Assembly (NCBI GenBank): GCA_038087875.1
Contig: CM075988.1
Span: forward strand, 20,212,001-20,276,000
Reading direction: 5' to 3'
Length of the DNA: 64,000 nt
Source: Malacoraja senta
Taxonomy: Eukaryota
Shown piece after piece: positions 3,136-8,675 of this stretch; within the stretch, counting starts at the first letter, position 1, and the number at the start of each line of letters is the position of its first letter. The translations under genes and the position numbers were made by a program. The notes under the pieces are model-generated. The model did no database searches. It was not told the origin of the DNA and was given only the letters and a program-made list of their open reading frames with translations.

Positions 3136-3968
3136 TGAGAATGCGGCCATGGACTCCAGTTACTATCTGGATTCATTCTCAGGAAGGCCACTTACCACGC
3201 TTACATCTGCTACAGTAACCGAGGGTACAGGGGCACCCGAGGCTGACAGGGTGCACCCGAGACTTCGCAATACGAAAAAATTTAACCACATAGCGCTGCA
3301 AATATGCCAATTTAGTTAGTATGTCATAGTTGTATTAAAATATACCAGTATTTATAAGGACACCAAAATGTTCAACAGCAGTGAGAAAATTGCAGTATTG
3401 CTTGTAACATGAACAAGGAAACCAACCACAAATCAACCCTGCGGTACTTCTGGTCTGCCTCATTAAACGTTCAGGGTGGTGTCCTGGAGGGATCCGTGCC
3501 AATCACTTTTCTCTGTCCAGAAAGATTCAGTGGCACGCAAGCAGGCTGTGGTGCCTGGAGAAGGAACGGGGTGAGAGAGAGATGTTTTTGATGGAACTGA
3601 AGGAGAAGATGTGTTTTTAATTATTTTAGGCGACTTCTTTACTGAACCAGATGCTATTCAACTGTAATTATGAATACGTGAAGAGAAGTGCTGTTGGTTG
3701 AAGCTCTATTTGCTACCACTGGCAGAGCTTTCTGCTGCCTCACAATGCACTGCTTCCTCTTTGATTGCCCCGTGGTGTTATAAAGCTGAAATACCCTTGT
3801 TCGACATGAACCTGCTTCCCACCACAATTTTATTACAAGAGGAAAGACAAGTAGTGACAACCGGGGACATTTTTTACTGACATTGGTTTAGGGGGGAGAT
3901 TCCTGCAGCATTTTCTCTCTCATTTTCTTTCACTTCTTGTAAGTACATTGTTTGCTTCTGTGTGACTA

Positions 3969-6043
3969 AAGCGAGGTCTTGTCTATGCTGGCAAGGCCTT
4001 TGATGGTTTTTTCCCTCAGTTGGTCACACTGGTCTGAGTCTTTGAGGCTTGCATTGTACCACCGTCCTAAACTCTTGACTGGCAGCTCTGACACCATCAG
4101 AATGGGTGTTTCATCAATGTGGAATCGCTTCTCTACGATTTTTCCTCTGATGATGGATATGCTCCTGGATTTGCTGGGTTTCAACTTCATCCGGGCCCAT
4201 GTTATGTTCGCATGAAGCTTTTCCAGCAGGCATTTGGTACATGCAATGGTTGAGGTCAGGGTGGTCATGTCGTCCATGTAGGCGCGAATGGGAGGTAGCC
4301 GCTGCCCAGACTGCAGCCGCTCTCCTCCTACGACCCACTTGGAAGCCAGGATGATCACTTCCATCGCCATGGTGAAGGCTAGCGGGGAGATGGTGCAACC
4401 TGCCATTATTCCCACTTCCAGTGATTGCAATGATGTTGTGTATTCTGTTGTTGTAATACAGAATTGCAAGTCTTGGAAGTAGTTTCTGACCAGGTTTGTA
4501 ATGGTCTTTGGCACATGGAAGAACTCGAAGGCTGTCCAGAGGAGAGAATGGGGAACAGATCCAATAGCATTGGCTAGGTCCAGGAATAAGACGTGCAGAT
4601 CTCTTCCTTCCCTTTTTGCAGACTGGATTTGATGCCATATCATGCTTGTGTGCTCTAAGCATCTAGAGAAGCCTGGTATACCAGCTTTCTGTACCGACTT
4701 ATCAATCAGGTTGTTCTGTTTCAGGTAGGTTATCATATCTTTGAGCAACAATGCTAAAGAAGATCTTCCCTTCAACATTCAAGAGATTGATTTGCTGGAA
4801 TTGGTCGATGTTTGAGGCATCTTTTTCCTTGGGGATCACCACTCCCCCTGCTCTTCGCCATGCTTTTGTGATGGTTTGCTTTCTCCATGCTATCTTCATT
4901 TGCCTCCATAAGAACCGTAGAACATTTGGAGCATGTTTGTACAGCCGGTATGGAACTCCGTTTGCTCCTGGAGCTGAAGCTGCCCTTGCCTTCCTTACGG
5001 CTTTCTCGACTTTGCTCCATCTTGGGAGGCTGTTGTCCAACTGGTGTTCTGGTTGAGGAATGGGTGGCATGTCTGGAGGTACCCCCCCTCTGCTCAAATC
5101 TTTGGTTGTCTGTGTACGTTGATTTCAGGTGGTCCTCCAATTCCCTCTTTGACACCTTAAGTGACCCGCTCTTTTCCTTTGTGAAGAGTCCTTTCACAAA
5201 TCTGAAGGGATCCTTGTAGAAGGATTTTCTTGCCTTCTCCATCTTGCGTCGAGTTCTGAGGGTTTCTGCTCTCCGCAGTCTTCCCAGGGGTCCCTTTAGA
5301 TCTGCTTGCAGGAGGTTGATGCCCACTCTTTCCTCCAGTGAGGATTTCCTCCACCGTTTCCTCAGGTCCCTTCTCTCTGATTAGGCGCTCGATTTCTCGC
5401 TGCCTTCTGAGCTTGGGAGGGGTTGTTGTTTCCTTCTTTTTCGTTCCGAAATTTTCTGCCCCGTAGGAGTAGATCAGATCTCTCATTTTCTCCAGTTTCT
5501 TCTCCATTGTTCCTTGAAGTCCGTCTAGGATCTTACTCAGGTCTGCGTCGATTGTTGCCCACTCTTTCTTGCTGCTGGACTTTGGCCACTTCACATGATG
5601 CCTTGCATCTTCTCCAAAGCAGGCTGCGTCTGGCTGGTTTCCGGGTTCTCAGATGTTATGCTTGAATTACTCTCCTTAGCCACTGGGGTATTGATGCTCG
5701 TTGGACTGTAGGTTGTATCCTGCCGCTGAGCTTCACTCGACTGATTTGATCTTTCTTTCAGGAAATACTGATCAATGCGAGGTCCCGGCCTCACCTCCTT
5801 CAAGCACTTCATCCACCCTTGATGTATTTTTAGGCATCTGATGGATGTTACCTTGGACCAGCCGCAGCTACACACTCGGAGTTCTTGTCCTGCAGCTGAT
5901 GTTGTACGTGCCATGCCGATTATTTTCTTCATCGTCGTGTTCATGCCAGGGTCGGTTACCGGGTTATCATCCGATGAGTCATCTTCCACCCCCGCTCTCG
6001 CAGACTCAGGGGGTGTTTTCCTCTTTGAATTTTTCGTAGCTAT
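3969..6043 (-). pseudogene. HERO ORF N-terminal part: zinc finger plus reverse transcriptase, frameshifted and truncated after ...ASIDKTSL
   Basis: Overlapping frame pieces 5591..5989, 5157..5594, 4772..5326, 4702..5097 and 3966..4778 join into one RT polyprotein (ASAPGANGVPYRLYK, WRRAGGVVIPKEK, INLLNVEGKIFFS). Confidence 0.88.
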
Positions 6044-6437
6044 GAGGGGTGACTCCTATTCACAATTCACAGTGACGGAGCCTGCCGTCATGGGTAGCTG
6101 GTCCATGACAGCCCCGTTGGGGTCTTTTCCTCCTGTCAGCTGTCTTTCCACGCCGTCACATGGTCTTTCCCTAGTTGTTAGCTGCACTTTCACAGCAGTC
6201 ACTGGATTTCTCCAGCTTATCAGTTGAGCTTATAGGACTTGATATTACAATCCCTACTATAATTGGCACATTGTTACTATCTTGAGTGGGGGTAGGGGTA
6301 AAAACTTTATTGGGGTCATCAGATGGGCACCCTCCTTCCTTGGTGTTTCTTTGATAGGCCCACGACACTTCCAGAGGGCTCAAAAGCAACACCTGGCATC
6401 CCAGGTGCGCTCCCCTCCGTTTTACCCCTCTTGCTGG

Positions 6438-7553
6438 TCATTTTGCAGCCCAGTTGGAGTCCTTCCTCTTAAGCCACAGCCAGTTGCCGCTTCGCTCGGC
6501 AGCAACTGACAGCGACTTGACGGCTTGCCGGAAGGCCTGTCCTTGAACTCCCATTCCCTTCAGGAGTCTGGTTGTGGACATGGCTACAAACCCTCTACAA
6601 CCAACCTCTACAGGGAGCACCTGGGTACGCCAGCCGCATTGTTCTGCCTCGGCTGCTAAGTCTGAATACTTCAGAGATTTGCGTTCATGTGCTTCACCAA
6701 CTGCAGCCTCCCAAGGCACAGTTAACTCCACGATGTACAGGGACTTCTGTGAGGTTGACCACAAGATCAGGTCCGGCCTGAGATTAGTTGTGATGATCTC
6801 TGGTGGAAAGATAAGCTTCTGGTCTAGATCAGCCTGCATTTTCCAGTCCCGGGCAGTGTCCAGGAGGGTCGGTTCCTTTCTTGCAAGTAGCTTCTCTGGA
6901 AGTTGTCCTGCCTTTACAAAAGAGCTGGTGTTCGAGAAAACAGGCGTTGGGGGAGGGAGGGCTTTGGTGGTAGTTCCCCTTCCTTCCAAGATAATCGGCA
7001 GTTGTCGCAGGACCTGATTGTGCCTCCAGGTGTAGCGGGAAGAACATCGTCGGTGGCTCTGATGATGAAGCTAAGACGGCCTCCTTCCATCTCTCACAGA
7101 TCCTTCCAGGTAAGCTTACGATGCTCCATGTTTTCCCAGGTAGTCCACTGGCCCTGTTTGGACTGTGAGACTGCCTTTGCACATCTCTCTGCCTCCTCTT
7201 GCTGACAGACCTCAGCAACTACCAGCTTTCTTCTCTGGGTGGATGTTGCCTTGTGCCATGTGGGTCGACTTGTCCCGAGTCCAATCCCACCTCTTCTCTG
7301 CTGCACCTGTCCTACAATGTCTCCATGCCTGAGAGCAAATTTTGCTTGCTGTACAGCCTCCGATGGGATCCACTTCCTCCCAGTTGCCAGTATGGGAGCA
7401 GCCGCTCGTACCGCATCATCTTGAGACTCGGTCAGGGTCATGTCCAGCCTCACTTTGGTGCATTTGTGTTCTTCTGTGAGGCTAGAGACAGGCAGTTCCA
7501 GAGCGCTGTGTCCAAACAAGCCGATATTGCTGAGGCAACGCGGGAGGCCAAGC
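6438..7553 (-). pseudogene. HERO ORF C-terminal part: post-RT region plus PD-(D/E)xK restriction-like endonuclease; CCHC knuckle deleted
   Basis: ORFs 7094..7555 (LGLPRCLS...TGRKW...QGQWTTWE) and 6438..6989 (RPD..VELTVPWE..VEVGCRGF..WLWLKR), with an in-frame stop and a deletion between them. Confidence 0.88.
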
Positions 7554-7778
7554 AAACTCAGCTTTAAGTACTAATAACAACCGTGTTATGCAGTTTGAAT
7601 TCATAAATTGTGAATTCAATCAATGGTCTTGTTGATTTTTCTGCACTACGTTCCCACCTTGCTGTGTTGCGTATGCTTTAAAAAAAAAATCAAATGTTAA
7701 TATTATGAAGTTCAGTTTTGCATGGACAGAAAATGATTAAATTATCTGAAATGGAGGAAAGATTTTCTCTCATTCTGA

Positions 7779-7795
7779 CACCAGCAGATGGCGTA
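7779..7795 (+). promoter_or_regulatory. Candidate CTCF site
   Basis: CACCAGCAGATGGCGTA matches the CCASYAGRKGGCR consensus and lies in non-repeat sequence. Motif match only. Confidence 0.4.
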
Positions 7796-8159
7796 GTCAC
7801 ACCACTGGAGAAACACAAGATCTTGATCTCTCTCTAAACTTGTGGAAAAAATTATATTGAGCAATTTTTCAGCCATGCAAACTGTGAGATTAAACATACC
7901 ATCCACGATAAGACATTAGTTTGCTTCATAATTCTTGTAATTTTATTGAAGATTAAAATTAAAAAGTTTCAATTTTACATAGGATTTACGTGTAATGTAA
8001 TGTACAGCTATAATATTGCACCATTTTATGTGTCTGTTAATAGGCTACCTGTAAAAAGGGCAGTTTTAATAGTTGATGCAATTTTTCCTGAATTCTAATG
8101 AATGGATAACGTATGGTGCTCTTCTAATTTTTCACTTGTTAAATTGATTATCATCAAAA

Positions 8160-8675
8160 TTTGAGGAAGGACATTCTTGCTATTGAGGGAGTGCAGCGTG
8201 GCTTCATGAGGTTAATTTCCGGGATGGCGGGACTGTCATATAATGAAAGAATGGAGCGACTGGGCTTGTATTCACTGGAATTTAGAAGGATGAGAAGGGA
8301 TCAAATAGAAACATATAAGGGATTGGACATGCTAGATGCAACATGTTCCTGATGTTGGGGGAGTCCAGAACTAGGGGCCACAGTTTCCGAATAAGGGGTG
8401 GGCTATTTAGAACTGAGATGAGGAAAAACCTTTTCACACAGATTGTGAATTTGTGGAATTCTCTGCCAAAGAAGGCAGTGGATGCCGATTCACTGGATGC
8501 ATTCAAAAGAGAGTTAGATAGAGCTCTTGGGGCTAGCGGAATCATGGGATATGGGGAGAAGGCAGGAACGGGGTACTGATTGTGGATGATCAGCCATGAT
8601 CACATTGAATGGCGGCCCTGGCTTGACAGGCCGAATGGCCTACTCCTGCACCTATTGTCTATGTATCTATGTATC
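8160..8675 (+). mobile_element. CR1 LINE 3' end (relatively young)
   Basis: RKDILAIEGVQRGFMRLISGMAGLSYNERMERLGLYSLEFRRMR and SRTRGHS..NLWNSLP, with a (CTATGTAT)-like tail. Confidence 0.85.

Follow-up and report, generated by a model that had tools for sequence, protein, structure and literature searches.

How does a retrotransposon come to lie in a chromosome with its second half ahead of its first? The question is raised by a 64,000-nt stretch of the Malacoraja senta genome (assembly GCA_038087875.1, contig CM075988.1, positions 20,212,001 to 20,276,000; hereafter the window, whose own numbering we use throughout), in which a HERO-like long interspersed nuclear element (LINE) occupies positions 7553-3969 of the minus strand with its parts in permuted order. 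An earlier note, made from the letters alone, had ascribed this arrangement to the integration of a circular or head-to-tail intermediate. We favor, with a probability of about 0.6, a different history: an old, decayed partial tandem in which a 5′-truncated tail precedes a unit that has lost its last ~1.6 kb through later deletion. The head-to-tail junction is real, and it is general in the related leader-complete copies examined; an insert of just under one unit derived from a circle, by contrast, is not supported by the test that the note had set, relatives with the same junction exceeding one unit. The locus is thus best read as a dead, broken repeat, and its “permutation” as a slice of a partial tandem.

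Anatomy and age of the permuted copy

Comparison by blastx and tblastn with full-length relatives, which were gathered by an exhaustive HMMER search and a word-indexed search, shows that the block 7553-3969 (minus strand) derives from a single LINE family and is uninterrupted, only the order of its parts being permuted. The closest intact relative, P0170, is a protein of 1154 amino acids (aa) and serves here as reference for aa coordinates. Read along the minus strand, the element starts abruptly at 7553, in mid-frame just after the reverse transcriptase (RT) core, and runs through the endonuclease to its stop codon as the earlier note had described; other copies run on past 7553 with different, conserved letters, visible as a loose end in organism X4. 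The first part of this upstream, 5′-truncated partial copy is the post-RT thumb/linker (7553-7038), which corresponds to aa 746-917 of P0170 with 82.6% aa identity (blastx). At 7038/7037 the CCHC zinc knuckle has been lost through an internal deletion of ~110 nt (37 codons): the C-x2-C...H...C motif lies within aa 918-954, for which blastx and tblastn find no counterpart in the window, and conserved loose ends occur on both sides of this point in X1, X2 and X4. The end of the linker and the restriction-like endonuclease (RLE, with its PD...E...K residues) follow at 7037-6438 (aa 955-1154, 77.5% identity by blastx), closed by a TGA at 6440-6438. The 3′ untranslated region (UTR), or tail, comprises 217 nt (6437-6221) and stops at the canonical 3′ terminus of the family (6219-6223); the 3′ end of the related copy L002 aligns to the same base. 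An AATAAA at 6306-6311, previously listed as a feature of the element, proved to be private to the window copy, being absent from the aligned position in L002 and L003, and there is no evidence that it is a polyadenylation signal.

The end of this tail is joined straight to the 184-nt 5′UTR leader of the downstream unit (6220-6037), the sequence ...CAACTG being followed immediately by ATAAGCTGG... The passage from 6221 to 6220 contains no poly-A, foreign DNA or filler, as had been noticed at the outset, and it matches the junction of the relatives base for base. The downstream unit then extends from the putative N-terminal zinc-finger region into the RT (6036-3969), positions 6043-3975 corresponding to aa 1-698 (tblastn and blastx), in line with the order of parts originally proposed. 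Pfam RVT_1 matches positions 3969-4778 (E 7e-15), and the block ends ~30 residues past RT motif 7; canonical copies carry CCTGG... beyond the point equal to 3969. The joint from 7553 to 3969 is present in contigs of X15 and X4. The head half of the copy is decayed, with several frameshifts and stops, and at the start of the open reading frame (ORF), near 6036, the window copy has ATA in place of ATG.

What is absent between the two outer ends is a short segment, aa 699-745. It amounts to 45-47 codons, or 135 nt, by comparison with L002, L003 and L004, a figure that bears out the earlier estimate of about 40-50 missing codons. The insert of 3585 nt, together with the ~110 nt of the internal deletion and measured against the 3858-nt period of L002, equals one unit minus 135 nt. 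Self-blastn of the element against the whole window and tblastn across the 64 kb detected no second occurrence of any of its parts, so the claim that nothing is present twice holds as well; the same searches rule out that the lost 3′ part was moved elsewhere in the window. Two further features of the ends, both possibly due to chance, may be recorded here: the letters GCTT occur at both outer ends (3969-3972 and 7550-7553), and a 9-nt string, CAAGAAGTG, at 3927-3935, 29 nt past the 3′ outer end, is the same as the canonical bases preceding the 5′ outer end.

The outer junctions are spanned by single-copy-depth contigs in four organisms (X15, X1, X2 and X4), those of X15 being identical to the window and those of the other three ~5-6% diverged. 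The single-copy DNA flanking the 3′ outer end (3700..3968) shows the same junction in all four, and that flanking the 5′ outer end (7554..7800) shows it in X15, X1 and X4; in X2 (organism B), a 129-nt deletion with 10 other letters inserted (joint from 7468 to 7598) has removed the 5′ outer junction. Because single-copy contigs bridge the outer junctions in four organisms, the insertion is old and orthologous, not a misassembly, and its permuted, truncated form predates the split of these organisms. Its two halves are equally diverged from relatives, both showing 79.8-84.4% identity to L002 and L003. Tests of the flanks by shuffling gave no significant trace of the integration event: the best candidate for a target-site duplication, GTACTTA(C)AAG, is set back from the ends by 8 and 22 nt (p ~0.04-0.12), and the best match to a tail remnant beyond 3969 was not significant (p > 0.28).

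Tails ahead of leaders in related copies

The arrangement seen in the window recurs throughout the family. Our sample consists of eight independent copies with a complete leader, taken from five other assemblies, two metagenomes and Logan contigs; the loci were picked by protein similarity, not by structure, and represent subfamilies with ~55-75% protein identity. The rule described below thus rests on related species, the copies of the source genome having been seen as summed contig tables. In all eight, a piece of tail lies directly upstream of the leader and is joined to it by the same precise junction. The length of this piece is highly variable: 19 nt in L003, ~37 nt in L008, 59 nt in L009 (57/59 identical to the copy’s own 3′ tail), 75 nt in L002 (100% identical), 126 nt in L005 (99.2%), 411 nt followed by 3913 nt in L006 (99.5%), at least 420 nt in the L010-L017 family, and 2967 nt followed by a period of 4017 nt in L007, which thereby reaches 1.74 units with an upstream tail 99.93% identical (2965/2967) to its own 3′ tail. 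Two other copies, L001 and L004, have no upstream tail, and both are truncated short of the leader’s first base. The 8/8 count places the lower 95% bound on the frequency of a tail before the leader, among leader-complete copies, at ~0.7. That the two tails of a copy are nearly identical (97-100% where both are present) speaks for a single event on a single template, and the partial tandem of a 5′-truncated tail followed by a full unit appears to be the normal full-length product of the family. For the source genome, the summed contig tables put the coverage of the junction (at 6210) at between a few and a few tens of copy-equivalents.

These copies also bear on the proposal that a common junction, combined with varied breakpoints and with no copy longer than one unit, would point to circles. 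The junction is indeed shared, but L007, L006, L005, L002 and L009, all from related species, span more than one unit, and their surplus always consists of an upstream 5′-truncated tail. The bases on both sides of the tail-leader junction are conserved between subfamilies. At the 5′ junction of L007 (L007:700-760), flank and element share a 12-nt microhomology, as expected if the upstream tail is the last part synthesized before joining to the target. The two flanks of L007 (674-752 and 7726-7806) are 86% alike over 81 nt, so that its target was a local repeat.

The junction coincides with a second conserved feature. The leader is a conserved structured RNA that starts exactly at the tail-leader junction and contains three hairpin regions; RNAalifold on nine copies gave 40 pairs, 14 of them with compensatory changes, and the minimum free energy z-score was -3.6. 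It is found at 6037-6220 (minus strand) in the window, L002:9824-9995, L005:3870-4041, L006:3822-3991 and L007:3707-3878, and is common to subfamilies whose proteins are only ~55-60% identical. A search of Rfam gave no match for the leader, nor any ribozyme match at E up to 10. An HDV-like ribozyme, suggested by eye from a nested double pseudoknot, was rejected: apart from the negative Rfam search, the covariation favors a simple, long hairpin with which the proposed P1 could not coexist. Part of the leader (6120-6209, ~90 nt) is covered by contigs 10-30 times as deeply as the interior of the element in three runs (X1, X15 and X16) but not in X4, depth being low at 6210-6220, and some contigs diverge after 6126 or before 6172; a possible reason for this excess is that other HERO families, or an abundant non-autonomous element, have the segment in common with this family. 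The tail, for its part, contains the motifs GUGUC...GAAACAC...CUGAUGA, in this order, at ~6383-6323 (minus strand) in the window and in the 3′UTRs of L002, L003, L006 and L010, so that they are conserved across subfamilies. They recall a hammerhead, for which Rfam gave no match at E up to 10.

A full-text literature search retrieved no account of partial tandems in HERO or other RLE-bearing LINEs, nor of a structured leader in HERO; Repbase Reports and Kapitonov et al. 2009 were outside its scope, so that prior knowledge is possible.

Origin of the window copy

The family rule offers a path to the window copy. Reverse transcription would be primed at the end of the 3′ tail and would run through the whole unit; at the first base of the leader, synthesis would continue unbroken into a second tail for a variable distance, and the cDNA would then be joined to the target. 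The product, a 5′-truncated tail followed by a full unit, would resemble the pseudo-long terminal repeat (pseudo-LTR) arrangement of Penelope elements. The 1333 nt at 7553-6221 of the window would represent this upstream tail, whose length lies inside the 19-2967 nt range of the relatives, and the downstream unit would be 6220-3969, its last ~1.6 kb having been lost, probably by a later deletion that took place before the four organisms diverged. The remainder would mimic a circular permutation. The 135-nt proximity of the outer ends is, on this account, most likely a coincidence: the chance of a breakpoint falling within 135 nt of the equivalent of 7553 is ~7% (~270 of 3858 positions), and the locus was flagged for this coincidence. 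Both the single continuous reverse-transcription event and the later deletion are steps that we infer from the structure of the copies. As to the crossing of the junction, it may occur by an end-to-end template jump, or on an RNA that already holds the junction, whether as a circle, as a concatemer or as a transcript begun inside an upstream tail. The presence and precision of the junction in 8/8 copies and the conservation of its flanking bases lean towards a templated junction, without amounting to proof.

Several points weigh against this reading. Neither a remnant of the lost 3′ part nor a target-site duplication could be demonstrated in the flank tests, so the later deletion is an assumption and not an observation. 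The short distance between the outer ends, the GCTT found at both and the nearby CAAGAAGTG string are possible traces of a one-step origin at unit length. The rule itself is drawn from related species and, in the source genome, from summed tables. Finally, template jumps of R2 in vitro reportedly often add bases (Bibillo and Eickbush 2004), and a precise junction in 8/8 copies would be unexpected from them; the crossing may therefore differ from a simple jump.

Such a one-step origin is what the integration of a unit-length circle would provide. The circle could be an RNA copied once round, or a DNA excised, for example, from a partial tandem when its two tails recombined; opening near the RT/thumb boundary, followed by joining to a broken chromosome, would have cost it ~135 nt. 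This would account for an insert as long as one canonical unit minus 135 nt in which no part is duplicated, for the shared GCTT and for the lack of a clear target-site duplication, which end-joining predicts. Unit circles could be shed by the partial tandems with two near-identical tails that occur in the family, and a template already containing the junction would be consistent with its invariable precision. However, the coincidence that a circle would explain has the ~7% chance expectation given above, in a locus selected for showing it. Those relatives that share the junction are longer than one unit, and their surplus is always upstream, which indicates synthesis primed at the 3′ end and not circles opened at random. 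Neither a circular molecule nor a second permuted copy was found in the contig tables, and no RNA run on record contains the junction stretch. We regard the circle as an unlikely, though possible, origin of the window copy.

A more speculative proposal extends the templated junction to the whole life cycle. HERO-type LINEs might copy an RNA that already holds the tail-leader junction, either a unit circle or a concatemer, perhaps produced by self-cleavage at the candidate hammerhead-like motif of the tail. Starting at the base before the leader, the RT would copy round and yield partial tandems of any length, and the window copy would represent one nearly complete turn captured at a break. If this were true, only copies with an upstream tail long enough to include the tail motif could yield the next generation. 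As a complete scheme, we consider it improbable.

Somewhat less probable still is a one-step insertion in which part of a cDNA or RNA longer than one unit was integrated without priming by the element itself, through internal priming or capture at a double-strand break; both ends would then have been truncated at the outset. This would agree with the lack of a significant target-site duplication or 3′ remnant and with a 3′ outer end inside the RT, where the family-typical priming, with 3′ ends at 6219-6223, never starts. Endonuclease-independent, 3′-truncated LINE insertions have reportedly been observed for L1 (Morrish et al. 2002). Nevertheless, events of this kind are rare relative to deletions in old repeats, and the sequences at the outer junctions give no specific pointer to one.

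It is very improbable that two separate insertions were involved, a full-length copy having inserted precisely at the 3′ terminus of an earlier, 5′-truncated copy through an endonuclease that targets the end of its own tail. Many RLE LINE clades are site-specific (PMC4640811), and the junction always falls on the same base. But the two tails of young copies are 99.2-100% identical, the 2965/2967 nt of L007 included, most 3′ ends in four genomes abut unrelated flanks, so that the element’s own tail is not required as a target, and the halves of the window copy are equally diverged from relatives. As for an assembly artefact, in which two fragments would have been wrongly joined, repeats are prone to collapse in assemblies, but the independent single-copy-depth contigs across the outer junctions in four organisms and an inner junction that is the family’s canonical one in at least eight other sources leave it practically no credit.

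Element class and comparison with known systems

The element is an R2-group, RLE-bearing, non-site-specific LINE with RT, CCHC knuckle and RLE. A LINE-type RT is present, RVT_1 being detected both in the window and in P0170. Among solved structures, its RT is closest to those of R2 proteins (E 1e-23), followed by L1 ORF2p (E 1e-21), the two being about equally distant. In an alignment of 38 homologues (A2), C33, C36, H44 and C49 of the CCHC knuckle as well as P144, D145, E160 and K176 of the C-terminal region are invariant; the window copy keeps the RLE (7037-6441), its knuckle having been deleted. An AlphaFold model of the homologous C-terminal 255 aa (pLDDT 85) matches, over ~250 columns, the linker-RLE of R2Tg, turtle R2 and R2Bm (E 1.6e-8 to 1.6e-6); the R2 entries matched include 9dou, 9nl2 and 8gh6, and the next matches are viral cap-snatching PD-(D/E)xK nucleases. 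A conserved N-terminal C-x-C...H...C pattern can be made out at aa 58-80 of P0170 and in the ORF 5989-5591 of the window, where Pfam gives no match. We also considered a DIRS-like element with a tyrosine recombinase and rejected it: RVT_1 is the only domain that Pfam finds in the intact 1154-aa protein, the remainder being R2-like linker and RLE.

The mode of insertion agrees with this assignment. In four runs, the 3′ ends at 6219-6223 run into unrelated flanks in tens of contigs per run; the agreement of the flank consensus at the family 3′ end is 0.39-0.53, indicating diverse flanks, and contig depth rises 10-20-fold toward the 3′ end relative to the interior. The common 3′ end and the depth gradient together form the footprint of target-primed reverse transcription with 5′ truncation.

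Homologues are plentiful in teleosts and also occur in lamprey (Lampetra) and lancelet (Branchiostoma). The N-terminal ORF of the window, compared with protein databases, matched nothing above 73% identity. Unit-length contigs of the family with intact ORFs are common in marine and other metagenome assemblies, with many ENA and Logan contigs of ~4 kb, and L003, L004 and L008 themselves come from ENA and JGI contigs labeled as metagenome; all of these most likely represent host (fish) DNA in the samples. An unrelated repeat fragment lies ~600 nt from the element in the window, where two ORFs at 8161-8579 of the plus strand (LYSLEFRR... and the next) resemble, by eye, the C-terminal end of a CR1/L2-type LINE RT.

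Textbook LINEs lack terminal repeats. The copies described here indicate that a whole clade of RLE-bearing LINEs, at least in teleosts, regularly produces copies that exceed one unit and have a precise 3′-to-5′ joint and a structured leader, and it appears that this partial-tandem habit has so far been described for Penelope elements and not for LINEs. A pseudo-LTR arrangement has been treated until now as a hallmark of Penelope. If the rule holds, the HERO consensus and the annotation of copy boundaries would be affected, since upstream tails can be mistaken for LTRs, for parts of the 5′UTR or, as in the window, for circular permutations. The family would also offer a natural system in which to set template jumping by R2-type enzymes against the copying of circular or concatemeric RNA. 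Gene insertion with R2-like proteins, in which concatemers are an undesired product, would be concerned as well.

Among the known systems, the HERO clade is one whose published accounts the element itself fits. HERO elements are RLE-bearing LINEs with mostly non-specific insertion (PMC4640811), known from sea urchin, lancelet and fish (PMC9004415); both traits match the family studied here, with its diverse flanks and its occurrence in teleosts, Lampetra and Branchiostoma, the correspondence being one with published descriptions.

R2 of Bombyx mori, birds and turtle has the same protein architecture, as judged from the RT matches and the C-terminal model. R2 is specific for a site in the 28S rDNA, and we know of no regular partial tandems in it; the HERO-like family, in contrast, has diverse flanks and a joint that is present and precise in 8/8 leader-complete copies. 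The passages of PMC7650587 that cite Bibillo and Eickbush (2002, 2004) describe an R2 RT that in vitro, on reaching the 5′ end of an RNA, can jump to the 3′ end of a second one. End-to-end jumping of this type would give tail-to-leader joints.

Retrozymes, and other retroelements for which rolling-circle copying of circular RNA has been proposed, leave the same head-to-tail genomic copies with a precise unit junction, but retrozymes are small and non-autonomous, whereas the HERO-like element is an autonomous LINE of 3.9 kb.

The closest parallel in copy structure is found in Penelope-like elements. Their full-length copies are preceded by a 5′-truncated copy of themselves, forming variable direct repeats, or pseudo-LTRs, and 5′ truncation is frequent among them (PMC8557442). 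The HERO-like family makes the same partial tandems, seen in 8/8 leader-complete relatives and in the window. Its proteins are of another kind: instead of a GIY-YIG endonuclease and a telomerase-like RT, it has an R2-type RT, a CCHC knuckle and a PD-(D/E)xK RLE, and it is therefore Penelope-like in the structure of its copies only.

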